A DNA stretch of 64,000 bases, taken from positions 174,437 to 238,436 of IMG/VR virus record IMGVR_UViG_3300037264_008423, one strand, 5' to 3'. Position numbers and translations under genes: made by a program. Below are positions 26,066 to 37,376 of this stretch, one piece after another (the stretch's first letter is position 1; every line of letters starts with the position of its first letter). Under the pieces are notes generated by a model. That model ran no database searches and was not told the DNA's origin. It saw nothing but the letters and a program-made list of their open reading frames with translations.

Positions 26066-26149
26066 GGGCATGTGGTTTACTCGGAATAGCAGACGAGACT
26101 CCCTCAGAAGGAGCCAGCCTTGGGAGTGCAATTCTCCCCATGCCCACCG
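26066..26149 (+). tRNA. tRNA-Leu(CAG), non-canonical core
   Basis: GGGCATG/CATGCCC, loop CTCAGAA, 7-nt connector. Confidence 0.8.
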
Positions 26150-26156
26150 ATTTAAA

Positions 26157-26240
26157 GCGCGACTGATTAAGCCAGAATAGCAGATGGTCCGCGTTTAGAG
26201 CGAGGGAGCCTTCAAGGTGCAAGTCCCTGGTCGCGCACTC
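26157..26240 (+). tRNA. tRNA-Leu(TAG), non-canonical core
   Basis: GCGCGAC/GTCGCGC, loop TTTAGAG; no encoded CCA. Confidence 0.7.
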
Positions 26241-26241
26241 A

Positions 26242-26502
26242 TTACTTAAAGTTGACCAAAGGATGGCCGGTCATGCCCAGCAGGAAGTTGATAAAAGCGA
26301 CTGCGACCAACAGGACAAAAATAGCGGTCCAGACGGTGAAGGCTAGCGGCGGCGGCGCTCCGAATTTCTGCATAAAGTAGCGCCCCAGGAACCAGATGAC
26401 TCCCAGGCAGATGCCGATGATCAAGACATAGAGCAAAGACTGCACCATACCATCGCCGCTAACATTCACAGCGGCTACGAACACCGAATTTAAAGCATTC
26501 AT
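26242..26502 (-). CDS. Small membrane protein (possible holin)
   Basis: Two to three hydrophobic helices in 86 aa. Confidence 0.65.
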   Translation of the reverse strand: MNALNSVFVAAVNVSGDGMVQSLLYVLIIGICLGVIWFLGRYFMQKFGAPPPLAFTVWTAIFVLLVAVAFINFLLGMTGHPLVNFK

Positions 26503-26537
26503 TATACTTTATACACGCCATTACCCGGTCGAATGGA

Positions 26538-27353
26538 CTAGCGCCGGTAGCGGTAAAGGCGCTCCACCACTTTTTGGCGGCCGGGGCCGTTAGGGATGTT
26601 TCGATGGCTTTCAAAGTCGCCCACCACGGTCCACGGTCCCTGGTCATAAAAAGCGTGCGGGTAGTGGGTGAGAAAGATATCCGCGTGTTTGGTCGCGCGC
26701 ACGGCTTCCACAAAAGTTACGTGGTTGAAAGCGTCATTCTCGTAGGCTGAGTTGTGACCTGCGGACTTGGGCCGGGATTCTTCCAGGTAGGGTGGGTCCA
26801 CCAGGTGCAGGATACCGGGATCATCCAATCGGGCCAGGCACTCATCCACGGGCCACTGGGACACTTGAACCTTGGCAAAACGAGCGGCGATGGTCCGCAG
26901 GTGCTCCGGCATGCTGGCCCAGCGCCCAGGCTTGTTGGCTTGCTTGGCGGCGCGCCCGTCCACGCTGTAAGACCAGCCGGTCTTGCCCGGCACCACGGCC
27001 ATCTGCATACGGATGAAAAAAGCCCATGCCTGGTCCACCGGACTTTCACCGGGTTGCCAAGCGGCCTTAAACTCTTCTCTGGCGTAGGGAGTGAGCGCCA
27101 CTCGGTCAATCAGTTCCGCGCCCCATTCCGGGTCGCGCAAGACTCGAAAAAAGTTTACTACCTCGTGATAGACATCGTTGACGGTCTCGAACATGGCTGG
27201 AGGCTTGGCCGCCATTACGGCGGCGCAACCGGCGCAAGTCTCCACGAAGTGGTTGTGTGGAGGCAGGCGCTCAATAATCCAAGGGGCCATGCGCACCTTG
27301 GCACCCCAGTAGCGGAAAGGAGCCATGTGTTTCATCTTGGGGTATAGAACCAA
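26538..27353 (-). CDS. dam: DNA adenine methyltransferase (Dam-like)
   Basis: FRYWGAK, FVETCAG, NDVY, VDPPY. Confidence 0.92.
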   Translation of the reverse strand: MVLYPKMKHMAPFRYWGAKVRMAPWIIERLPPHNHFVETCAGCAAVMAAKPPAMFETVNDVYHEVVNFFRVLRDPEWGAELIDRVALTPYAREEFKAAWQPGESPVDQAWAFFIRMQMAVVPGKTGWSYSVDGRAAKQANKPGRWASMPEHLRTIAARFAKVQVSQWPVDECLARLDDPGILHLVDPPYLEESRPKSAGHNSAYENDAFNHVTFVEAVRATKHADIFLTHYPHAFYDQGPWTVVGDFESHRNIPNGPGRQKVVERLYRYRR

Positions 27354-27362
27354 AGCAATTTA

Positions 27363-27447
27363 GCCAGCGTGGTTAAGGTGGAATGAGCAGACCCCTGCGA
27401 CTTAAAATCGCGGAGCCTTGGGGGTGCGAGTCCCCCCGCTGGCACCA
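27363..27447 (+). tRNA. tRNA-Leu(TAA), non-canonical core
   Basis: GCCAGCG/CGCTGGC, TGCGA-CTTAAAA-TCGCG. Confidence 0.85.
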
Positions 27448-27531
27448 CGGCGCGTGGTTTACCAGGAACAGCAGACTGGCGAGTTTCAAAAACTCTGAGC
27501 CTTGAGAGTGCAATTCTCTCTGCGCCGACCA
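27448..27531 (+). tRNA. tRNA-Leu(CAA), non-canonical core
   Basis: CGGCGCG/TGCGCCG, loop TTCAAAA. Confidence 0.85.
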
Positions 27532-27551
27532 TTTCAAGACAAACAAAAAAT

Positions 27552-27594
27552 GTTTACATTTTAATTTGACACCCGTTCCGCTATTTAATAGAGT
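27552..27594 (+). promoter_or_regulatory. Sigma70-type promoter with upstream GTTTAC box
   Basis: GTTTAC-N8-TTGACA-N17-TAGAGT. Confidence 0.7.
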
Positions 27595-27637
27595 CAGCGC
27601 CGTTCTTTGAGCAAATGCTCGAAGTGTCAGTTTTCAT

Positions 27638-28285
27638 ATGAAAAAACTATCTATGTTAGCGGTCGGAGCCATTCTGGTCGCTATGTTTGCGACAGGATGC
27701 AGCACGACTCATTCTAAAAGCACGACTCCGCTTTCGGAGCCGGTAACGGTCAGTGGACCCGTTAATGTCACAGGTCCCGTCACAGTCAGCGGACCCGTTT
27801 CTGTTACCAGCGGCCAGTCGTCCTCCCTGTCGGGAGGCGCGGCGCAACCCGCTTTACAGTCTGCGCGATCCACCGCCACGGGCGCTGCGGTGGGCGCTAC
27901 GGTGGGTGCTACAGCGGTGAATGGCGAGGGCACGGTCCTGGAGCTTAAGAAAGAGACCGCCACAGCGCAAAAGACGACCGTCAGCAACGGCAAAGCGGTC
28001 ATCCGAAAAAATGTCATCACCGAGCAGGTGAGTGTGCCGGTCCAGACCCGGCGAGAAGAGTTTACGGTGGAGGAGATCGCGGACGATGCCGCGCCCACCA
28101 CATCCTGGGGCGAGGCCCAGACGGTATTTGAGCTACCCTTAACCAGGGAATCGGCTTCGATTGTCATTACCCCGCGCGTGTATAAGCGGGTCAAGATCAA
28201 TAAAACGGCCACGGTGGACCAGGGCGCGGTAACGGGATCAGTTCGCACGGAAAACGTGGAAGTGGTCAAGCAGCCTGCCCCGTAG
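27638..28285 (+). CDS. Lipoprotein with YsnF/AvaK (DUF2382)-like domain
   Basis: Lipobox FATGC; LELKKE...VIRKNVITEQVSVPVQTRREE...LPLTRE. Confidence 0.8.
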   Translation: MKKLSMLAVGAILVAMFATGCSTTHSKSTTPLSEPVTVSGPVNVTGPVTVSGPVSVTSGQSSSLSGGAAQPALQSARSTATGAAVGATVGATAVNGEGTVLELKKETATAQKTTVSNGKAVIRKNVITEQVSVPVQTRREEFTVEEIADDAAPTTSWGEAQTVFELPLTRESASIVITPRVYKRVKINKTATVDQGAVTGSVRTENVEVVKQPAP

Positions 28286-28300
28286 ATTCAGCGGCAAGGG

Positions 28301-28330
28301 CACCTGGAACGGGTAAAACCGTTCCAGGTG
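28301..28330 (+). terminator. 12-bp hairpin after lipoprotein gene
   Basis: CACCTGGAACGG-GTAAAA-CCGTTCCAGGTG. Confidence 0.55.
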
Positions 28331-28347
28331 AAGATTTAAACAAAAAA

Positions 28348-28390
28348 GTTTACAATATTATTTGACACAGGGCTGAGCAGTGGTTAAGGT
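28348..28390 (+). promoter_or_regulatory. Sigma70-type promoter with upstream GTTTAC box
   Basis: GTTTAC-N8-TTGACA-N17-TAAGGT, upstream of the fMet/tmRNA unit. Confidence 0.7.
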
Positions 28391-28411
28391 AGGCGCAGAT
28401 TTTTGAAAAAT

Positions 28412-28478
28412 GCTCGTGCGAGCCAATTGAGCTAACGGTTCATGCTTGAATCCGGTGCTCCGGTAAGCACGAGCGCCA
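28412..28478 (+). ncRNA. 67-nt minimal tRNA-like RNA lacking a normal T arm
   Basis: GCTCGTGC/GCACGAGC+GCCA; three small hairpins, two with TGCT loops. Confidence 0.5.
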
Positions 28479-28481
28479 AGT

Positions 28482-28557
28482 CGCGGGGTGGCGCAGATGG
28501 TAGCGCGCTAGGCTCATAACCTAGAGGTCGCCGGTTCAAGTCCGGCCCCTGCAACCA
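28482..28557 (+). tRNA. tRNA-Met(CAT), initiator type
   Basis: C1:A72 mismatch, loop CTCATAA, canonical GG and TTC. Confidence 0.9.
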
Positions 28558-28774
28558 ATTTATCCGGGGACACCCGGATTTAAAGCAGGCGAAAGGGCTA
28601 GTTGAAGCGATTAAGAGTCGGGAGATGTCTCAGCTCAACGTTAAACCGGGTCCGTGTAGCCTGTAGCTTTAAACGTGGTGAAGTTTTAGTAGCCCAGGTC
28701 GCACCGGTAAGCGGCGTGCGAGAGGATTTTTTACCGGTCCTCTTGACGTTTCTTGGAATTTGATCTTTGACAGT

Positions 28775-29204
28775 GGGGGCGTATTAGACTCGATCTAGTG
28801 CCCTGAACGCTTAGCGACAGCCGAGGATGGTGGTTGGACCTCGATAATACCTCCACCGAAAACATCAAATGCCGAAAGCACTGATGATACGGCTCTCTTA
28901 GCCCAAGCCGAAGCGATCTTCGCCGACCCGGATGAAGTCCTCGCCAAGACCGGCTATGCAGAGCCAGCTTTGGCCTAGCGCCAAACCGTCCACCCTCTGA
29001 CGCCTGCTACGGGGTGTGGGCGTAACCAGCAGGCAAAAACGCGGTCTCTTCCCGTGAACCGCGCCGTAGATCACGTGAGTGTGGCCGGGGTGATGTCTTG
29101 CCGTTCTCTTACCCGGTCATTCTAAATAAAGAAGCGGAGATGCCTGTGGATGCTCGCGCAAGGACTATTAGAGACAGGAGGGGCAGTGCCTCCTCGCCTC
29201 CACC
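28775..29204 (+). ncRNA. ssrA: tmRNA
   Basis: 5' GGGGGCGTATTAGACTCGA; 3' T arm plus CGCCTCC-ACCA with G3:U70; tag frame 28871-28978 after the CAAAT resume context. Confidence 0.92.
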
Positions 29205-29239
29205 AATTTCCGCCTCCACTGTTTACAGTTCTGTAATCC

Positions 29240-29854
29240 ATGAACGTGGCTCTGAACTGTAAACAGTGTGGTGATTCTTTCGAGATCCGAAAGGCCGAGC
29301 ATAACCGGCAGCTTAAAAAAGGCAGGCAGCACTTTTTCTGTAGCCTTTCCTGTTGCGCCGCTTATGGCAACACAGCAAGGATCGCACCAGTCATAAAGAA
29401 AAACTGTAAGCATTGCGGTGGAGAGTTTGAGACAAAACAGGATCGGCATGAAGCTGACTTTTGCGGTAAACGATGCGCTTCGCTGGGAAGCGTAACTGCG
29501 TATCGTCGAGCCAGAGCGAGGCTGTCGGGACAGGCGCATGCCAATAATTTTAGCAACGCTAAGGCGCTGCTTGGTAGAGAAAATAAGAAATATAGGCTGC
29601 TGATTCCTTTGCTGACCGAAAGACAGATTAGGTATGAGTTTGAAAAAAGGATCGATAAGTTTGTATTTGACTTGGCGCTCGAAGACCAGAGGGTTTTGAT
29701 CGAGTTTGACGGTCCAGAGCACCGCACGCCTAAAGGGACCGAGCGAGATGCGGTCAGGGACAGGTCCGCCGAGCTGCTGGGTTGGAAGGTTTTAAGGATA
29801 CCGGTGAAAACCGGTCAGATTATTCCAGCTTCCATGCTGGAAGCTGTTCTTTGA
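29240..29854 (+). CDS. DUF559/Vsr-like endonuclease with N-terminal Zn-binding repeats
   Basis: CKQC..FFCSLSC..CKHC; FVFDLALEDQRVLIEFDGPEH...RD...LGWKVLRI. Confidence 0.85.
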   Translation: MNVALNCKQCGDSFEIRKAEHNRQLKKGRQHFFCSLSCCAAYGNTARIAPVIKKNCKHCGGEFETKQDRHEADFCGKRCASLGSVTAYRRARARLSGQAHANNFSNAKALLGRENKKYRLLIPLLTERQIRYEFEKRIDKFVFDLALEDQRVLIEFDGPEHRTPKGTERDAVRDRSAELLGWKVLRIPVKTGQIIPASMLEAVL

Positions 29855-30098
29855 TAAATTTTGCGCCGGTCTGGCCAAGATCGTTCGTAGCGTTTGTGTA
29901 ACGGAACTTGTCTTTCATTCTCCAGACTGGCGCGATCTTTTTAATTTGACGGGTCGTTTGATGTCGGTTATCAGCACCAAAATCATAAGTTGGAAATTGT
30001 GGCGTAACAACCACCAGGGGCACCATCAGCTCACGCGCGTCGTGGTCTGAATTGCCCCTGAAGCTAAAATCAAAACGATGTCGCTTTTTATCCGTCAA
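29820..30098 (-). CDS. Hypothetical protein
   Basis: 92-aa ORF filling the gap. Confidence 0.45.
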   Translation of the reverse strand: MTDKKRHRFDFSFRGNSDHDARELMVPLVVVTPQFPTYDFGADNRHQTTRQIKKIAPVWRMKDKFRYTNATNDLGQTGAKFIKEQLPAWKLE

Positions 30099-30106
30099 AA
30101 CTTTTT

Positions 30107-30268
30107 AGCGCGCGAACCGCGCGGGTCGAATGTGATTGGTTACCATCAAACCGTTGGTTATTGGTGCAAATCCAATCCGGTCCGCAAGGGCCGGTAGCTC
30201 AATCAGCAGAGCAGCGGTTCCCGTAAGGGATTTCCGATCCTGAGCCTTACCCGTGCGGTTCGCGCGCT
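30107..30268 (+). ncRNA. yrlA: YrlA-type Y RNA (circularly permuted tRNA-like domain plus Ro60-binding stem)
   Basis: 19-bp terminal stem; GTCGAATG with bulged C opposite TTACC; T arm, GCAA-closed acceptor, D arm; about 0.8 kb from Ro60. Confidence 0.88.
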
Positions 30269-30313
30269 CATTTTGGTTCTACAGTGGAGATTAAAAGTAA
30301 ACAAAGCAAAACT

Positions 30314-30880
30314 ATGCTCGATAAAAATAATATCCTCTCTGTGGTGCAAGCCAACCTGTTTGAACCAGTTAACGACGCTAACCGCGAGGCTACCCGGCAG
30401 CGCATCGCTTCCGGTTTGAATCTCGGCCCGGACAAAGTGCTCCTGGGCCGTGAGGCCATCACGATCATTGATGATCAGGAAGTTCATCAGGTCCAGATCG
30501 GCACGGATGGTCAAGCCGTGCTCCTGGGAAACGCCATCGACCGCGCTCTCGGCTTCCTCAACGATCTGTTCAACTGCGACCCCATCGCGATCTGGCTGGC
30601 TTGCTGCAACCGTATTCCGATCAGTGAGAGGGTGAGCCGGGAAAATGTCATGCAGCCGGTGAGCCACGTCCGCGCCGACGGCACGTCTTACTCCCTCAGC
30701 GGTTTGGACCTGGTGAACGGCGTGCTGGCCGCCATGACGGGCAGATACCTGGAAATTGATTTCGTGAAGCCCGAGGAGGGCCGTCCGCCGACCGCGATGA
30801 AGGGCTTTAAAATTCACAGGGAGGCCCTCCAGTCTTCTGAGCCTGCCGCAAATTTAGGCGGCGAGTCCCATACCGATTAG
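30314..30880 (+). CDS. Hypothetical protein between the Y RNAs
   Basis: ORF of about 190 aa. Confidence 0.7.
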   Translation: MLDKNNILSVVQANLFEPVNDANREATRQRIASGLNLGPDKVLLGREAITIIDDQEVHQVQIGTDGQAVLLGNAIDRALGFLNDLFNCDPIAIWLACCNRIPISERVSRENVMQPVSHVRADGTSYSLSGLDLVNGVLAAMTGRYLEIDFVKPEEGRPPTAMKGFKIHREALQSSEPAANLGGESHTD

Positions 30881-30891
30881 CTGCTTTTGAT

Positions 30892-30985
30892 GCCACGAGC
30901 CGAACAGGACCGCGCCCTTGAGTGAGGGGGCTGTCGATGTTTCATGGCGCGCTTCCCGCGCCGTCCAACTTGCTCGTTGCCGTTA
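30892..30985 (+). ncRNA. Second Y RNA candidate (non-tRNA-like)
   Basis: ACGAGC-C-GA pairs with TT-GCTCGT; followed by terminator and Ro60. Confidence 0.7.
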
Positions 30986-30992
30986 GAAAGTC

Positions 30993-31015
30993 AGGCCGCA
31001 CGCAGCGGCCTTTTT
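30993..31015 (+). terminator. Rho-independent terminator after the Y RNA candidate
   Basis: AGGCCGC-ACGCA-GCGGCCT then TTTT. Confidence 0.6.
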
Positions 31016-31058
31016 GCTGCCACATGGTTGGGGGCAGACTGCGCTGAAAGGAAAAACC

Positions 31059-32708
31059 ATGAGTGTTTACCAGACGGTTAGCCGTAAGGCAACCCCGCAA
31101 AATCAACCCATTCCCGGTTCCAAGCAGGTGAAGAACTCCGCAGGTGGTTACACCTGGCTCCTGGATGACTGGAGCCGCCTGCGCCGATTCCTGGTGCTTG
31201 GCTCCCAGGGTGGAACGTATTACGTCAAGGAACAGGATCTCGTCAAGGCCAACGCGGAAGTGGTTGACCGGTGCTTGGGTCTTGACGCGGCCAGGACGAT
31301 TCAGCAAATCGTGGAAGTTTCGGATAAGGGCCTGGCCTATCGCAACGAGGCGGCGCTCTTCGCGCTGGCCAAGGCCGCCGCCGACCAGAATGAAAAGTCA
31401 CGAGCGTTGGCTCTTGACGCGCTGCCGCAAGTGGCGCGCACCGGCACCCACCTGTTTCACTGGGCAAACTATGTTCAGTCGATGCGGGGCTGGGGCCGCG
31501 CCCTGAGAAAGGCGGTCGGGCACTGGTATAACCAGTGGACGGCGGACGAGCTGGCCTACCAGGTCGTCAAGTATCAGCAGCGCGATGGCTGGTCCCACCG
31601 GGACCTGCTCCGCCTGGCGCACCCGGTCGCCGAGACCGAGGGGCACGACGCGGTATTCCGCTGGGTCCTGGGCGGCCAGGAGGCCCTGGCGGCGCGCACG
31701 GTGAAGCGCCAGCGTCCCGGTCAAGAGGTAAAGCCTGAATACACCTACCCGGATCTGGCTTTCCACCTGCCGCAGTTCATCGAGATCTTTGAAAAGGCCA
31801 AGACGGCGGACGCCAAGACGCTTGTCAAGCTGATCACCGAGCGCAGCCTGCCCCGCGAGGCGATCCCCACGGAGCAGTTGAACTGCCCGGAGGTTTGGGA
31901 GGCGCTCTTAGTCAACATGCCAGCCACGGCCCTGGTCCGCAACCTGGGCAAGATGACCAGCATCGGGCTGGTCAAGACGCTTTCCAAGGCGTCCAAGACC
32001 ATTGTGGACAAGCTGGGTAACGCCGCGTGGCTCAAGAAGTCCCGCGTCCACCCGATGCAGTTTTTGATCGCGGCCAAGGTGTATGCCCAGGGTCACGGGG
32101 AAAAGGGCAAGCTCGCCTGGACGCCGGATCAGTCGGTGGTCTCGGCCCTGGAGCGCGCCTTCTACGCCTCTTTTGGCAACGTCAAGCCCATCGGCAACAA
32201 CGTGCTGATCTCGCTGGATATCTCCAGTTCGATGGGACATACGATGGAAGGCACCTGCTTGTCCTGCTACGAGGCGGAAGCGGCCCTGGCGCTAATCCAT
32301 GTCAGCATTGAGGACACCGTGGGGGTCATGGGTTTCGCCACAAACTACCGGGAAATCAAGATCCGCAAGGGCATGAGCCTGGTGGACGCGATGCAGCACG
32401 TCGCCGGTCAGGGCTTCGGCGGCACGGACTGCTCGCTGCCGTTTCGCTGGGCGGGAACGGAGCGGATGGATGTGAACTCATTTATCACGGTCACGGACAA
32501 TGAATCATGGCACGGCGGTGTTCACCCGTCCCAGGCGCTCAACGCCTATCGCCAGGCTTCCGGCAATCAGGCCCGGTCGGTCGTCATGGGCATGACGAGC
32601 ACGGGCTTTACTATCGCGGACCCCAATGACGCGGGTTCGCTCGACGTGGTGGGCTTTGACGCCTCCGCGCCTGCGCTCATCTCGGATTTCTGCCGGGGTG
32701 ATGTCTAA
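31059..32708 (+). CDS. rsr: Ro60/TROVE ribonucleoprotein (Rsr)
   Basis: NSAGGY..LRRFLVLGSQGGTYY; ARTGTHLF; KYQQRDGWSHRDLLRLAHP; vWA DISSSM, GGTDCSLP, TDNESW, VVGFD. Confidence 0.97.
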   Translation: MSVYQTVSRKATPQNQPIPGSKQVKNSAGGYTWLLDDWSRLRRFLVLGSQGGTYYVKEQDLVKANAEVVDRCLGLDAARTIQQIVEVSDKGLAYRNEAALFALAKAAADQNEKSRALALDALPQVARTGTHLFHWANYVQSMRGWGRALRKAVGHWYNQWTADELAYQVVKYQQRDGWSHRDLLRLAHPVAETEGHDAVFRWVLGGQEALAARTVKRQRPGQEVKPEYTYPDLAFHLPQFIEIFEKAKTADAKTLVKLITERSLPREAIPTEQLNCPEVWEALLVNMPATALVRNLGKMTSIGLVKTLSKASKTIVDKLGNAAWLKKSRVHPMQFLIAAKVYAQGHGEKGKLAWTPDQSVVSALERAFYASFGNVKPIGNNVLISLDISSSMGHTMEGTCLSCYEAEAALALIHVSIEDTVGVMGFATNYREIKIRKGMSLVDAMQHVAGQGFGGTDCSLPFRWAGTERMDVNSFITVTDNESWHGGVHPSQALNAYRQASGNQARSVVMGMTSTGFTIADPNDAGSLDVVGFDASAPALISDFCRGDV

Positions 32709-33285
32709 TTCACGGAACCGCGCCCTGGGTGACCGGGACGCGGTTCTACTCTTTACTATGGGTGCTAATCGTCACTGTGTGATTGACTGTTTCGAGTTTG
32801 AGCCAGATAGCAATATCGTGGAAATTGGAACCGATCAGGGCGGGGGTTCCACTCGATTTTTGGCGGACTACGCGCGAGCGCGCCGTTTGAATTTTTGGAC
32901 CGTGGACATCAATCCCCAGCGCATTGATCAGGCCGCCCGGCTGGGCTGCCACGCGGTTTGCGCCAAGGGGGAGGATTTTCTGATCGACTTTGGCAGGCCG
33001 ATTCACTTTGCCTATCTGGACAATCTGGACTGGATGGGCGGCGGCATGGAGGTCCCCGCCAACGTGGCCAGCGCCCAGGCTCACCTGCTTCAAGCGCGGC
33101 GTTTGCTCCAATGGATGACAGCGGGGGTCATCGTCATTGATGATACCTGGCTTAGCCAGGGATTTGGCAAGGGTTATTACGCCGCTCAATTTCTGGCTGA
33201 TTCCGGTTTTACGGTGGAATCGGGACCCGGCTGGCTGGTCCTGGTTCGGAGCATGGCCGCTGGCCGCCGTCTATCGGAAAAGTAA
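32701..33285 (+). CDS. Class I SAM-dependent methyltransferase
   Basis: IVEIGT..GGGST..WTVDIN..FAYLD..VIVIDD; start overlaps Ro60 stop. Confidence 0.82.
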   Translation: MSNSRNRALGDRDAVLLFTMGANRHCVIDCFEFEPDSNIVEIGTDQGGGSTRFLADYARARRLNFWTVDINPQRIDQAARLGCHAVCAKGEDFLIDFGRPIHFAYLDNLDWMGGGMEVPANVASAQAHLLQARRLLQWMTAGVIVIDDTWLSQGFGKGYYAAQFLADSGFTVESGPGWLVLVRSMAAGRRLSEK

Positions 33286-33297
33286 TCGCTTTCAATT

Positions 33298-33486
33298 ATG
33301 GCCTACCTCAATAAGATTGTAAACGGACACCGGGTTCGAGTGAAGTTGCTCAGTCCCGCCGCCTTGCGGAAGCTGAAAAAAGAAGAACTGGAGTTGGTGC
33401 GAGAGATGTCCGGTCTCGCCGATGAATTGATCGCCGAAAGGCGCACGGAAAGCAAACCGGTCAAGCGTGCCGGGACTGTCCGCTAA
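33298..33486 (+). CDS. Small basic hypothetical protein
   Basis: 62-aa ORF ending inside tRNA-Ser(GCT). Confidence 0.5.
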   Translation: MAYLNKIVNGHRVRVKLLSPAALRKLKKEELELVREMSGLADELIAERRTESKPVKRAGTVR

Positions 33487-33537
33487 ACAGCTCGCCCCTT
33501 CACTGCGGGTGTGGTGCAAGTCCACTGCTTTCCGCCA
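33447..33537 (+). tRNA. tRNA-Ser(GCT), C33
   Basis: GGAAAGC/GCTTTCC-GCCA, CTGT-CCGCTAA-ACAG, long variable arm. Confidence 0.8.
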
Positions 33538-33543
33538 TTTTAT

Positions 33544-33635
33544 GGCCCCTTGGTGTAACAGTAACACGACCGTCTTATACACGGGAAGTCCTAGATGTGG
33601 GCACGATGCTGGTGCAAATCCGGCAGGGGCTACCA
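33544..33635 (+). tRNA. tRNA-Ile(TAT) with long variable region
   Basis: GGCCCCT/AGGGGCT-ACCA, loop CTTATAC, about 22-nt variable region. Confidence 0.75.
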
Positions 33636-33644
33636 CTATTTAGA

Positions 33645-34682
33645 CTATTGGTTTACAGGCACTTGAGCTACGCTCATTGTGGTTTTGACTTGGGATTTGT
33701 AGATCTGTCTCGAAACACCACTGAGACGATACAGATCCCATAGCGCAGTGCTAATAGCCTTGGCAGTGGGGCGATCCAGTTTGCTGTTATCACTTTTTTT
33801 CCATTCAGGCCGACTTGCCACGTATTGGTGGATGATCTCCACAACATGCGCCATGTGGTTCAGAGTGAGCTGATCGAGCCACCGCTCAAAACTTTCACGA
33901 GGATTTTGCGCGGCTTCTTTACCAAAGAAGAAGTCCCACACCCAAGCCATGCAGATGTTTATTTGACGACTGCCATGCTTATACTTGTTCTCGTAGGCCC
34001 GGTTGATGCAATTGGTAAGATCTTCGGCCCAATCCAGGTAGCGGGTAAGCGTGGGAGACTCCAGCCTCTTCAAGAATTTACCACGGTATTCGTAGTCCAC
34101 GATTTGCCAGTCGTTAAAACCGTGGCTACTAAGCCACGTGAGTATCTCGTAACCGCTAAAATGCCTGGCGCGCGCAAAGCCAGCGGCCACGGTGCTTGCC
34201 AGCGTGCAGATGACACTGGATCTGTGGAGTCCCTTAACCAGATTTTTAGCGTTGGATTCGTTAATTTGAGTATTAATGGGTTGGCTCAGATCAAGGCTAA
34301 CCGTGCTTGCATTTCTCAGTGTTACGGAGGTAAGTTGCGAGATCGGAGGATTAGGGCTAGGGGCCTGAACGCGCACTTCAACTTGTTGGACGCGCACTTC
34401 AGCTTGTTGCGAGGATTTCTGTGTGCCCTCTCTGTAACCTTGAACAAAGCCTTCATGAAAGCCTTTAGTATAGCCCGTCTTTTTTCCATTTCGCTCGCCC
34501 ACGGTCTTACCGTAATCGAAGCCCTCCTCCCAGGCTACGTGAACCTGCTGGTTCGTTATTGTATTAATGATCAGCGCGTTCCTGTTGACGCTTTCAATGC
34601 CCTTCTCTAGTTTTTGAAAAGCTTCATCAGGCTCTTTGGTTTGCGGTGGGGGTTCGTTTTTGAGATTTAATTCAGCATTCAT
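33645..34682 (-). CDS. Hypothetical protein with GxxxG repeat segment
   Basis: EEGFDYG..VGE.NG..TGYTKGFHEGFVQGYREG; AT-rich. Confidence 0.75.
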   Translation of the reverse strand: MNAELNLKNEPPPQTKEPDEAFQKLEKGIESVNRNALIINTITNQQVHVAWEEGFDYGKTVGERNGKKTGYTKGFHEGFVQGYREGTQKSSQQAEVRVQQVEVRVQAPSPNPPISQLTSVTLRNASTVSLDLSQPINTQINESNAKNLVKGLHRSSVICTLASTVAAGFARARHFSGYEILTWLSSHGFNDWQIVDYEYRGKFLKRLESPTLTRYLDWAEDLTNCINRAYENKYKHGSRQINICMAWVWDFFFGKEAAQNPRESFERWLDQLTLNHMAHVVEIIHQYVASRPEWKKSDNSKLDRPTAKAISTALWDLYRLSGVSRQIYKSQVKTTMSVAQVPVNQ

Positions 34683-34716
34683 AGTTTCATTTAGAACGAA
34701 AAAAGTTCTATGGGTC

Positions 34717-35334
34717 ATGATTCGTCAAAGCAGCATCGACGCTTACCGTGAAGCTCAGGAGAGCGGCCTGGTCGCCCAGTGCCAGATCCTTGTGCTGGAA
34801 ACCGTGTTCAACCACCATCCGGTTACGGCCAATGAAGTTTTAGACATCCTCTACCAGCAGAACCAGCGTGTGTCTCAAAACACCATCAACACGCGCTTCA
34901 GCGAGTTGGAGGGCATGGGTTTGATCAAGACGGTGGAGCGCAAGCAGGACAAGGTGACTGGCAAGCTCAATAACGCCTGGGTGCCCTGCCCGGAGTTCAG
35001 TGACGAGCAGATTCAGGCTTACAAGCAGGCGCGCCAGCAGGCCGTCAAAGAGAGGCAATCCAACGTGGCGCGCCTGGAGGCGGAGTGCGCCAACCTGCGC
35101 GCCGAGGTTCAACGTTTAAGCCGCCACGCTACGGTGAGCACCGCTTTCACACCGGTCGCCGCCCCCGCCGCTGGCGCTCAGCGGTATGAGCTTTACGCCA
35201 AAGACAAGCCGGGCATGACCGTCAGCAGCCTGGAGCGCGCCAAATCGGAAAAGATGATGCTTTTCTACTGCGAGGCTTTTCAGGTCCCGATGATCCAGGT
35301 TAAGATCAGAAAATTAGCGGTTATCCCGGAATAA
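34717..35334 (+). CDS. Winged HTH DNA-binding protein
   Basis: TANEV...SQNTINTRFSELEGMGLIK; coiled coil. Confidence 0.75.
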   Translation: MIRQSSIDAYREAQESGLVAQCQILVLETVFNHHPVTANEVLDILYQQNQRVSQNTINTRFSELEGMGLIKTVERKQDKVTGKLNNAWVPCPEFSDEQIQAYKQARQQAVKERQSNVARLEAECANLRAEVQRLSRHATVSTAFTPVAAPAAGAQRYELYAKDKPGMTVSSLERAKSEKMMLFYCEAFQVPMIQVKIRKLAVIPE

Positions 35335-35345
35335 ACAGGCACCCT

Positions 35346-35651
35346 ATGACACATCCTATCATTGAGGCTTTTCGGATCGAACAATGCACGATGGGCGGCT
35401 CGGCGTTTCTGCCCACGGTTTACCTGGACAAGGCGGTTGCGACCAGCATCGCCCAAAGTAAAAACGAGGAATTTGTTGACTATAAAGTCAGGCCAGTGCG
35501 CGTGAGGCGCTTTGGAAAAACCGAGTGCGTGGCGGTTGAGAATATTTTAACCCTGGACGAAACGACCGAGCCGGAGCATGCGCGCCGGAACGCTTTAAAG
35601 AAACTGACTCCCTCGGACCGGAAGGCGCTGGGGTTAACCCCTTTAAAATAA
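35346..35651 (+). CDS. Hypothetical protein
   Basis: 101 aa; ALKKLTPSDRKALGL C-terminus typical of phage small proteins. Confidence 0.65.
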   Translation: MTHPIIEAFRIEQCTMGGSAFLPTVYLDKAVATSIAQSKNEEFVDYKVRPVRVRRFGKTECVAVENILTLDETTEPEHARRNALKKLTPSDRKALGLTPLK

Positions 35652-35660
35652 AAACGAGCT

Positions 35661-35993
35661 ATGTATGGTTTTTCCGATTCCTGGCACACGCTGGTCATTG
35701 ACTTTGGCGCGGAAGAGCGCCTTCAGCGCGCCGCGCAGGAGCAGACGATTGGCACGGAGATCGTAACGCTTACCGTTGACGGTTTCAGACAGCGTTACAT
35801 CGAAGAGAGCGACCTTCATTTTTTAGAAAACGATCCCCGCTGGCAGAGACTCAAAGCGGTGTTTAGGCCGGGGGACGTGCTAGTCAAGTTTAATAGCAGC
35901 GAGGCGAGCTGGGCAGCGTTAGCCGGACGCGCTGGATACGCGGTTGTGCGCGACGGCCAAGCGGTGGATAGTTACTTGACTCGGTTATCTTAG
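35661..35993 (+). CDS. Hypothetical protein
   Basis: 110 aa; WAALAGRAGYAVVRDG. Confidence 0.65.
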   Translation: MYGFSDSWHTLVIDFGAEERLQRAAQEQTIGTEIVTLTVDGFRQRYIEESDLHFLENDPRWQRLKAVFRPGDVLVKFNSSEASWAALAGRAGYAVVRDGQAVDSYLTRLS

Positions 35994-36076
35994 GGCGCGT
36001 GGTTTACCCGGAACAGCAGACGGGCCTGGTCGAGAACCAGTGAGCCTTGGAAGTGCAATTCTTCTCGCGCCCACCA
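35993..36076 (+). tRNA. tRNA-Leu(GAG), non-canonical core, C33
   Basis: GGGCGCG/CGCGCCC, loop TCGAGAA. Confidence 0.82.
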
Positions 36077-37210: not shown

Positions 37211-37376
37211 TAAGCGAAAGGAACGTTGAAAGGTAGCGCCACTCCAACTGAGGTCGGGGGTTCAAATCCCTCCTCCGCCCCCAAAATCATATGGCGGAGT
37301 AGCTCAGCGGTAGAGCATCAGGATCAGGCTAACGGCGCTAAGCGTTTTGACGAACAGAGCTAAAAAGCTTCGCTTA
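37211..37376 (+). ncRNA. Second YrlA-like circularly permuted tRNA-like RNA
   Basis: T arm, then CTCCGCC-loop-GGCGGAG acceptor, then D arm; closed by CTGA/TCAG, TAGCGCC/GGCGCTA, TAAGCGAA/TTCGCTTA. Confidence 0.75.

Follow-up and report, generated by a model that had tools for sequence, protein, structure and literature searches.

Leucine tRNA genes with a predicted extra helix in a jumbo phage and in mobile tRNA gene arrays of Verrucomicrobiota

Can a bacterial leucine tRNA dispense with its long variable arm and instead form a helix between two linkers that are normally single-stranded? This question is raised by five tRNA-Leu genes in a 64,000-nucleotide stretch (hereafter, the window) of a 238-kb jumbo phage record, IMG/VR IMGVR_UViG_3300037264_008423. 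The original prediction, made from the sequence alone, held that all five isoacceptors (CAG, TAG, TAA, CAA and GAG) share a 7-nt connector between the acceptor stem and the D stem and a hairpin-less variable region, that the GGTT of the connector can pair with AGCC of the variable region so as to rebuild the variable-arm helix, and that conservation across the five genes suggests function. The observation proved to be correct, all five genes being located where they had been placed (Table 1). Each consists of a 7-bp acceptor stem; the 7-nt connector (TGGTTTA in three genes, TGGTTAA and TGATTAA in one each); a D arm of 4 bp with the loop GAAYAGCAGA (one extra G in TAA); a 17-nt anticodon arm, with the anticodon in a 7-nt loop on a 5-bp stem, directly abutting the D stem so that there is no nucleotide 26; a 7-nt variable region (GAGCCTT in four genes, CAGCCTT in one); a T arm with the loop TGCRAKT; and A73.

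Table 1. Coordinates of the five tRNA-Leu genes in the window, with the elements of the CAG gene. R1 and R2 are covariance models without and with the extra helix (X), respectively.
Feature	Strand	Position	Position with encoded CCA	Length (nt, without CCA)	Remarks
tRNA-Leu(CAG)	+	26066-26146			Followed by CCG, not CCA; R1 98.4 bits
CAG acceptor stem	+	26066-26072 / 26139-26145
CAG U8	+	26073
CAG helix X, 5' strand	+	26074-26077			GGTT
CAG D arm	+	26080-26097
CAG anticodon arm	+	26098-26114
CAG helix X, 3' strand	+	26116-26119			AGCC
CAG UU	+	26120-26121
CAG T arm	+	26122-26138
CAG A73	+	26146
tRNA-Leu(TAG)	+	26157-26237			Weakest copy; connector TGATTAA gives an A.C in helix X; one mismatch in the anticodon stem (G.A) and one in the T stem (A.C); no CCA encoded (CTC); R1 90.0 bits, R2 87.0 bits
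tRNA-Leu(TAA)	+	27363-27444	27363-27447	82	Connector TGGTTAA, variable region GAGCCTT; mis-framed by ARAGORN as 27372-27447
tRNA-Leu(CAA)	+	27448-27528	27448-27531	81	Starts directly after the CCA of the TAA gene, with no spacer; MFE fold gives a 6-bp helix X (GGUUUA/UGAGCC)
tRNA-Leu(GAG)	+	35993-36073	35993-36076	81	Anticodon loop TCGAGAA, with C at position 33; MFE fold gives the 6-bp helix X

Standard tRNA finders largely fail on these genes. The Rfam tRNA model (RF00005, gathering threshold 29 bits) reported none of the five even at E<=10, although one bacterial relative reaches 31.4 bits, and ARAGORN detected only the TAA gene, in the wrong frame. No canonical tRNA-Leu exists anywhere in the 238-kb record, and these five genes, within a set of roughly 35 phage tRNAs located between 9 and 38 kb of the window, supply all five standard bacterial Leu anticodons. 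Searches of the phage for a LeuRS domain and for RtcB were likewise negative. Reading the GAG gene as a Ser tRNA with a CGA anticodon and U33 was rejected because the stem register does not allow it.

The architecture is not a chance resemblance, as a covariance model built from the five genes finds relatives elsewhere at E of about 1e-19 to 1e-25. A first collection pattern was too loose and yielded mostly chance hits, but the subsequent searches identified 18 further strong hits in nine IMG/VR contigs, at least 120 soil, peat and sediment metagenome contigs, and 96 stretches in genome contigs, mostly labelled Verrucomicrobiota and many on contigs of 100-850 kb; in total, the family comprises 251 unique sequences from IMG/VR phage contigs, these metagenome contigs, and about 80 loci in genomes, mostly Verrucomicrobiota MAGs. 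In contrast, megablast and blastn searches of GenBank phages gave no match, Ro60 protein hits there say nothing about the host, and a search for related loci carrying the neighbouring DUF7873 protein found none. Among the 251 unique sequences, the connector is 7 nt in 190 and 8 nt in 56, and the variable region is 7 nt (6 in a few relatives) with no self-pairing; A73 is present in 250, U8 in 250, UU before the T stem in 251, and an encoded CCA in 216. A scan with no anticodon filter found only Leu anticodons in family-like sequences. The 7-bp acceptor and 5-bp T stems are each 99% paired and covary, and together with the lack of complementarity for an extended acceptor stem, this rules out an 8/4 or 9/3 reading.

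The proposed pairing, of nucleotides 9-12 with the four bases before the UU that precedes the T stem, is supported by several lines of evidence. Because MAFFT alignments and alignments fitted to a covariance model without helix X place the extra connector base inconsistently, helix X could not be scored by columns, and we therefore used registers anchored on sequence landmarks. In this analysis, 96.8% of cells are paired, against 7-74% in slid registers, and 0 of 1000 shuffles reach the observed pairing; in the 26 sequences that were not selected by the search motif, pairing is 81.7% against 65% in shuffles (0 of 1000). In an Infernal alignment fitted to a model with helix X, which leans towards the structure, 96.0% of cells are paired and 3 of the 4 pairs change on both sides. 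Independent 4-mer pairs that differ at 2-4 positions still pair fully (GGGG/CCCC, GUCC/GGAU, GACC/GGUU, GGUC/GACU, GGCC/GGCC and GGGU/ACCU). When helix X is added to the model (R2 compared to R1), most divergent members with full compensatory pairing gain 3.9 to 7.4 bits and two gain 1.1 to 1.7 bits, whereas members with a mismatch lose about 3-5 bits and the main type is unchanged (about -0.5). However, helix X is highly conserved in sequence, with 195 of 251 being GGUU/AGCC, partly because the search motif demanded AGCCTT, so that covariation rests on a few dozen sequences that are related to each other, and tolerance of G.U further weakens the test. Some members carry a mismatch, namely the TAG gene of the window, the GGCU/AACC group (C.A), and the GGCC/AGCC and GGCC/CGCC groups (fourth pair). 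The MFE folds of the CAA and GAG genes contain helix X, but those of the other three genes of the window do not give the full helix. Extension by pairs 13-44 and 14-43, which works for CAA and GAG, is by inspection not conserved in the family and is not claimed here.

Thus, the original interpretation is only partly supported. The connector does pair with the variable region, and conservation far beyond this phage argues for function, but the notion of a rebuilt variable arm is not supported: a variable arm is a local hairpin, whereas helix X is a nested helix whose strands come from the 8-9 connector and the variable region, so that it closes off the D and anticodon arms together and turns the four-way junction into two three-way junctions.

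It had been specified beforehand that the prediction would fail if this architecture were the norm in the host lineage, and this is not what we found. One Verrucomicrobiota genome (G006) has canonical class II tRNA-Leu for TAA, TAG, CAG, CAA and GAG scattered over the chromosome, within a complete dispersed housekeeping set, whereas its X-helix genes lie only in a 6-kb array of at least 20 tRNAs that contains RtcB and is surrounded by integrase, HNH, R-M, AbiE and IS110 genes. This array also includes a true 74-nt type-I-like Leu(GAG). Two further genomes, G009 and G010, also have canonical Leu genes. Only 1 of 151 sampled genomes of the phylum gave a strong match, which is a lower bound given that only 30 candidates per genome were scored. 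The bacterial array cluster is present in at least 10 metatranscriptome runs, with a local depth peak over the CAA gene, but the contigs are shallow and span several genes, and DNA carry-over is not excluded, so that neither transcription nor processing is shown; the phage window itself occurs only in DNA runs.

Comparison with known tRNAs clarifies what is new. Relative to the canonical class II tRNA-Leu of Verrucomicrobiota, such as those of G006, which span 81-85 nt and can be of the same length (81 nt in Leu-TAG), the variable-arm hairpin is gone (7 nt instead of about 13), about six nucleotides have been added between U8 and the D stem (connector of 7-8 nt instead of 2), nucleotide 26 is missing, helix X is present, and A18/G55 replace G18/U55; the score is below or near the Rfam threshold. 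The Leu anticodons, U8, A73, the UU before the T stem and the 7/5 acceptor/T branch are shared, and the D loops are nearly identical, GAATGGCAGA in canonical and GAATAGCAGA in X-type genes, with T loops TTCAAGT and TGCAAGT, respectively. The type I tRNA-Leu(CAA) of Streptomyces coelicolor, like mitochondrial tRNA-Leu, lacks the long variable arm, coexists with class II Leu tRNAs in one cell and is charged by the single bacterial LeuRS (PMC6614811), but has a plain 5-nt variable loop and, as far as that paper describes, an ordinary cloverleaf, with no extended connector or extra helix; here, all isoacceptors are affected, and the genes are on mobile arrays and phages. Long tRNA arrays (PMC8421152) are similarly dense same-strand clusters of supernumerary tRNA genes, with RtcB and homing or HNH nucleases nearby, a patchy distribution and a mobile context, but that literature describes gene organisation and expression, and no connector-variable helix is mentioned in the papers found. 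Allo-tRNAs and 8/4 or 9/3 tRNAs (PMC5389517), tRNA-Sec and tRNA-Pyl (PMC7609411) are natural departures from the cloverleaf, some found in phage tRNA clusters and metagenomes, but alter the acceptor/T-stem split or shorten loops, whereas the X-type keeps 7/5 and adds a helix between the two inter-domain connectors. We found no description of the X-helix design.

Taking into account all these observations, we consider it most likely, with moderate confidence, that the five genes are functional supernumerary leucine tRNAs of a non-canonical structural class, which we call X-helix tRNA-Leu. They retain U8, the Leu-type D loop (G13, A14, A15 ... AGA), the UU before the T stem, A73 and, in most genes, an encoded CCA. 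Elements of this kind (A73, U8, A14 and A15-U48) are used by bacterial LeuRS (PMC6614811). The host LeuRS, which in well-studied bacteria does not need the variable arm, is therefore expected to charge them. The class is not specific to this phage but travels with mobile tRNA arrays found in some Verrucomicrobiota chromosomes and in large phages from soil and sediment, so that the host of the phage is probably a member of that phylum. The genes, the family, its distribution, the covariation in helix X and the coexistence with canonical Leu tRNAs are demonstrated by our analysis, whereas charging, use in translation, the three-dimensional arrangement and the identity of the host are inferred without direct evidence of aminoacylation, ribosome use or mature RNA ends. 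Several features could impair normal function: many members, including all five in the window, have A37 after G36 where canonical CUN-reading Leu tRNAs have G37, the GAG isoacceptor has C33, and the T loop has G55; furthermore, a 4-bp helix between the connectors might disturb the L shape.

Other explanations appear less likely. The one concerning the origin of the design, which is compatible with functional tRNAs but remains a tentative possibility, is an anti-defence adaptation, whereby 'stealth' Leu tRNAs without the protruding arm, and with altered elbow bases, would escape immune or toxin nucleases that recognise or cut class II tRNAs, keeping phage or island translation going. Phage tRNAs escape tRNA-targeting defences through sequence changes (PMC10264068, PMC11555353), a Septu system is reported to cut the variable loop of tRNA-Tyr (PMC13096335), the G006 array sits among defence and mobility genes and contains RtcB, a tRNA repair ligase, and long tRNA arrays with RtcB nearby are linked to translational stress (PMC8421152). 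Only Leu lost the arm, and Leu is the one class II tRNA whose bacterial synthetase is not known to need it; the Ser and Tyr tRNAs in the window keep theirs. This argument is circumstantial, however, as no nuclease aimed at the tRNA-Leu variable arm is known in this lineage and the phage has no RtcB. Should it nevertheless be correct, which we regard as possible but improbable, X-helix tRNA-Leu would be a distinct fifth-helix fold that evolved on mobile arrays and phages, moving the variable-arm pairing into the core and changing A18/G55 so as to stay chargeable by LeuRS yet become invisible to such nucleases or toxins, a structural and not merely sequence-level escape from tRNA-targeting immunity.

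It is unlikely that these are tRNA-like RNAs that do not decode, such as decoys or sponges for tRNA-binding toxins or enzymes, regulators, processing punctuation or decaying pseudogenes. Failure of the standard finders, the unusual core, G55, C33 in GAG, A37, the three stem mismatches and missing CCA of the TAG copy, and the suggestion that L-array tRNAs could be toxin sponges (PMC8421152) are compatible with such roles, but the phage carries exactly the five standard Leu anticodons, the anticodon loops are conserved per isoacceptor, A73, U8 and the encoded CCA are nearly invariant, and all four classical stems covary strongly, which is purifying selection on a complete adaptor and not decay. 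Still less likely is that helix X does not form and that the connector and variable region are conserved single strands engaged in tertiary contacts or protein binding: related sequences can beat shuffles without any structure, so that the apparent covariation could reflect shared ancestry, but the fully compensated variants, the much poorer pairing in slid registers and the gains in model score speak against this. Finally, the possibility that the phage copies are ordinary host-like genes, suggested by the predominance of Verrucomicrobiota among the genome hits, is already contradicted by the canonical tRNA-Leu genes described above and is highly improbable.

Because standard finders miss or mis-frame these genes, phage and MAG annotations will wrongly report missing tRNA-Leu. 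The distribution of the family also provides a host-lineage marker (Verrucomicrobiota) for otherwise unassignable soil and sediment jumbo phages, and the link to mobile arrays and phage tRNA sets bears on what supernumerary tRNA sets are for, with back-up under translational stress and escape from tRNA-cutting defences as the candidates. If these RNAs are charged and used, they show that a bacterial translation system accepts an elongator tRNA whose four-way junction is replaced by two three-way junctions, which widens the known limits of tRNA architecture outside mitochondria and offers a natural scaffold for orthogonal or engineered tRNAs.

The window, the last 64 kb of a 238,436-bp IMG/VR virus record, 57% G+C and judged 96% complete, encodes a phage-type DNA polymerase, an NAD-dependent ligase, a UvsX-like recombinase and a head maturation protease. 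Between about 9 and 38 kb, it holds a very large tRNA island in which ARAGORN finds 23 tRNAs and Rfam adds five more, and which also contains a tmRNA (Rfam score of 55 bits, ending in CCACCA) that is not called by ARAGORN. No canonical tRNA-Leu is present anywhere in the record. A motif search recovered exactly the five leucine tRNA genes that had been singled out in the original prediction, and the observation on which that prediction was based is confirmed. Each of these genes consists of a 7-bp acceptor stem, a 7-nt connector (TGGTTTA, TGGTTAA or TGATTAA), a 4-bp D stem with the loop GAAYAGCAGA, a 17-nt anticodon arm that directly abuts the D stem, a 7-nt variable region (GAGCCTT or CAGCCTT), a T arm with the loop TGCRAKT, and A73. 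Three of the genes are followed by an encoded CCA, and the Leu(CAA) gene starts on the base immediately after the CCA of Leu(TAA), so that the two tRNAs are head-to-tail without a spacer and one cut would make both a 3' and a 5' end. The Rfam tRNA model reports none of the five genes even at E<=10, whereas ARAGORN reports only Leu(TAA), and in the wrong frame. The Leu(TAG) copy is the poorest, with an A.C in the proposed additional helix, one mismatch each in the anticodon and T stems, and no CCA.

Locations of the leucine tRNA genes and of the other features discussed (the window unless a genome, contig or stretch is named)
Location	Strand	Feature
26066-26146	+	tRNA-Leu(CAG)
26157-26237	+	tRNA-Leu(TAG)
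27363-27444	+	tRNA-Leu(TAA)
27448-27528	+	tRNA-Leu(CAA)
35993-36073	+	tRNA-Leu(GAG)
27445-27448		encoded CCA of Leu(TAA) and first base of Leu(CAA)
9261-37741		tRNA genes, nearly all with a non-standard T loop
14365-14440	+	tRNA with a CUA anticodon, putative suppressor
28482-28557		tRNA-Met
28775-29205	+	tmRNA
30152-30216	+	YrlA-like match, sub-threshold
31014-32708	+	Ro60 orthologue
33544-33635	+	tRNA-Ile(UAU)
37233-37344	+	YrlA-like match, sub-threshold
viral contig L124:5537-5618		canonical-shaped Leu(CAA) with X-type D and T loops
bacterial cluster L159:4980-5285		cluster present in metatranscriptome runs
genome G006, contig C5:802.8-808.8 kb		array of at least 20 low-scoring tRNAs
G006:C5:802997-803073 (L385:10998-11074)	-	Leu(GAG)-like tRNA of type-I shape
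stretch L316:7489-7561		Leu(GAG)-like tRNA of type-I shape
L385:11857-11943 (G006 array)		tRNA-Thr(UGU), 87 nt
genome G010, contig C44:22900-22987		relative with a longer variable region
genome G010, contig C44:23972-24060		relative with a longer variable region

The same architecture is found in a large family. A covariance model of the plain cloverleaf (R1) and two motif scans detected it in nine other IMG/VR contigs of 4.5-203 kb. It also occurs in at least 120 soil, peat, wetland and sediment metagenome contigs, often as tandem runs of 3-5 Leu genes among other tRNAs, and in 96 stretches of species-representative genomes, of which about 80 contain true members. About five in six of the labelled genome hits are Verrucomicrobiota MAGs (Limisphaerales, Pedosphaerales, Opitutaceae, Chthoniobacterales and others), and several of these hits lie on contigs of 500-850 kb. 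A landmark-based scan yielded 251 unique sequences, of which 250 have A73, 250 have U8, all have UU before the T stem, and 216 encode CCA. In a scan with no anticodon filter, every sequence with the family hallmarks carried a Leu anticodon. In the GAG gene of the window and in 32 of the 35 GAG members of the family, the anticodon loop is TCGAGAR, with C33 instead of the near-universal U33, and many CUN-reading members, including all those in the window, have A37 rather than G37. Two relatives of 88-89 nt in genome G010 keep the X-type connector but carry a longer, partly self-complementary variable region and may be hybrids or decayed copies.

The original prediction proposed that GGTT of the connector pairs with AGCC of the variable region. 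We defined the register of this putative helix, denoted X, by landmarks, namely, nt 9-12 after the acceptor stem and the four bases before the UU that precedes the T stem. In this register, 96.8% of the cells are paired across the 251 unique sequences plus one hand-parsed divergent member, compared to 7-74% in slid registers, and none of 1000 shuffles reached the observed value. Because the collection motif demanded AGCCTT, we also analyzed only the 26 sequences in which the 4-mer is not AGCC; in these, 81.7% of the cells are paired against 65% for whole-strand shuffles (0 of 1000). The informative variants are GGCU/AGCC (in which a C-G replaces the U.G), GGGG/CCCC, GGGG/CCCU, GUCC/GGAU, GACC/GGUU, GGUC/GACU, GGCC/GGCC and GGGU/ACCU. 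A second covariance model that adds the four pairs (R2) leaves the scores of the main type unchanged but raises those of most divergent members with full compensatory pairing by 3.9-7.4 bits, and those of two (GGUC/GACU and GGGU/ACCU) by only 1.1-1.7 bits, whereas members that carry a mismatch lose about 3-5 bits. On the alignment fitted to R2, which leans towards the structure, helix X is 96% paired and three of its four pairs change on both sides, and the four classical stems covary strongly. MFE folding gives helix X, extended to 6 bp, for the CAA and GAG genes of the window, and only part of it for the others. Exceptions exist, namely, the A.C in the TAG gene of the window, a C.A in a GGCU/AACC group, and a mismatch at the fourth pair in part of the TAA subfamily. 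We consider the helix to be well supported, albeit by a modest number of independent changes.

The 5' strand of helix X lies between U8 and the D stem, and the helix is nested around the D and anticodon arms, so that the four-way junction becomes two three-way junctions: acceptor/X/T, with linkers of 1, 2 and 0 nt, and X/D/anticodon, with linkers of 2-3, 0 and 1 nt. The interpretation offered in the original prediction is therefore only partly supported: the pairing itself is supported, but the helix is a nested fifth helix rather than a rebuilt variable arm, which is a local hairpin. The zero-length linkers suggest that the usual acceptor-T and D-anticodon stacks persist, and U8, A14, A15 and the final U (a candidate U48) are kept. 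We infer that X runs alongside the D stem, between the 8/48 and 26/44 levels of the core, spanning the distance that nt 9 and nt 44-48 normally span as single strands. Whereas the genes, the family and the covariation in helix X follow directly from the sequence comparisons, the spatial placement of X, the charging and decoding capacity of these RNAs, and the identity of the phage host are inferences.

The housekeeping Leu tRNAs of the Verrucomicrobiota genomes examined here are ordinary class II molecules. In the 3.7-Mb Verrucomicrobiota genome G006, the Leu-TAG gene has the connector TG, the D loop GAATGGCAGA, nt 26, a 13-nt variable hairpin and the T loop TTCAAGT, and is 81 nt long, the same length as the X-type, whereas other canonical Leu genes seen in this analysis are up to 85 nt. 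Compared to these, the X-type has about six more nucleotides after U8, about six fewer in the variable region, no nt 26 as a free base, and a coupled change at the elbow, from G18 to A in the D loop and from U55 to G in the T loop. One viral contig carries a canonical-shaped Leu(CAA) that already has the X-type D and T loops and looks like an intermediate form. The change at the elbow is not limited to the Leu genes as far as the T loop is concerned: nearly all tRNAs of this phage have a non-standard T loop, most with U54-G55-C56 (GTGCRA...) and a few with GATCG, GAGCG or GTGAGA, and only tRNA-Met keeps GGTTCAAGTCC; the same G55 is found in the bacterial array tRNAs. In addition, at a relaxed threshold, ARAGORN calls a tRNA with a CUA (amber-reading) anticodon and a standard GGTTCGATTCC T arm, which is not reported by Rfam at the gathering threshold. 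Other departures from the standard shape were also detected. The tRNA-Ile(UAU), of 92 nt, has an insertion of roughly 19 nt in the variable region that can form a 4-bp hairpin, which would make it a class II-shaped Ile tRNA with A73, and in the G006 array, ARAGORN likewise calls an 87-nt tRNA-Thr(UGU). The phage further encodes a Ro60 orthologue (TROVE + vWA, E about 1e-50) with two sub-threshold YrlA-like (Y RNA) matches nearby, each containing a tRNA-like module; Ro-like proteins are annotated in many actinobacteriophages and in the Sinorhizobium jumbo phage Phosso (best hit, 47% identity).

We next addressed the possibility, which would have argued against the original prediction, that this architecture is the norm in the host lineage, and found that it is not. 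In genome G006, Rfam finds a dispersed, high-scoring housekeeping tRNA set and, separately, the 6-kb array of low-scoring tRNAs. The X-type CAA, TAA and CAG genes lie in that array, together with a 74-nt type-I-like Leu(GAG); such Leu(GAG)-like tRNAs of 73-74 nt, with a normal 2-nt connector, a 5-nt variable loop and the same TCGAGAG or TTGAGAG loop, represent a true type-I shape beside the X-type genes in the bacterial arrays. The G006 array contains RtcB and an SPFH protein and is flanked by a tyrosine integrase, an HNH nuclease, a restriction-modification pair, AbiE and an IS110 transposase, with ordinary chromosomal genes beyond. The same genome has canonical class II tRNA-Leu for TAA, TAG, CAG, CAA and GAG elsewhere. 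Furthermore, in an even sample of the phylum, only the query genome among 151 gave a strong match, although the sensitivity of this search was reduced.

The phage has no LeuRS domain, so charging, which is inferred here, must rely on the host enzyme. In well-studied bacteria, LeuRS relies on A73 and on core and D-loop geometry rather than on the variable arm, whereas seryl- and tyrosyl-tRNA synthetases use the arm, which fits the fact that the Ser and Tyr tRNAs of the phage keep theirs. Charging of a tRNA-Leu with a short variable loop by a bacterial LeuRS is documented in Streptomyces coelicolor (PMC6614811). The full set of five anticodons, the isoacceptor-specific conservation of the anticodon loops, the covarying stems, A73 and the encoded CCA all argue for working adaptors rather than decoys or pseudogenes. 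The evidence of expression is weak: a common bacterial cluster is present in at least ten metatranscriptome runs, but the contigs are shallow and span multiple genes, and although one run shows a local peak over the CAA gene (about 40 against about 5), DNA carry-over cannot be excluded. As to the origin of this shape, the most interesting possibility is escape from tRNA-directed immunity or toxins, given that phage tRNAs evade anticodon nucleases through sequence changes (PMC10264068), that a Septu system is reported to cut the variable loop of tRNA-Tyr (PMC13096335), and that the arrays sit among defence and repair genes. However, we regard this explanation as tentative at best, and a neutral origin within the array lineage, followed by spread, is equally possible.

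Full-text literature searches for this architecture returned reviews of non-canonical tRNAs, the allo-tRNA paper, the description of long tRNA arrays and the S. coelicolor study, none of which describes a connector-variable helix or a Verrucomicrobiota or phage tRNA-Leu of this kind, although, because most subscription journals were outside the scope of these searches, this is absence of evidence only. Taken together, our results indicate that these genes represent a new structural variant of tRNA-Leu, distinguished from the canonical class II form by a nested fifth helix and carried by mobile tRNA arrays and phages. The family is a supernumerary, horizontally moving set, matching the long tRNA arrays described by Santamaria-Gomez et al. 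(PMC8421152), and its sharing with this phage points, by inference, to a Verrucomicrobiota host.
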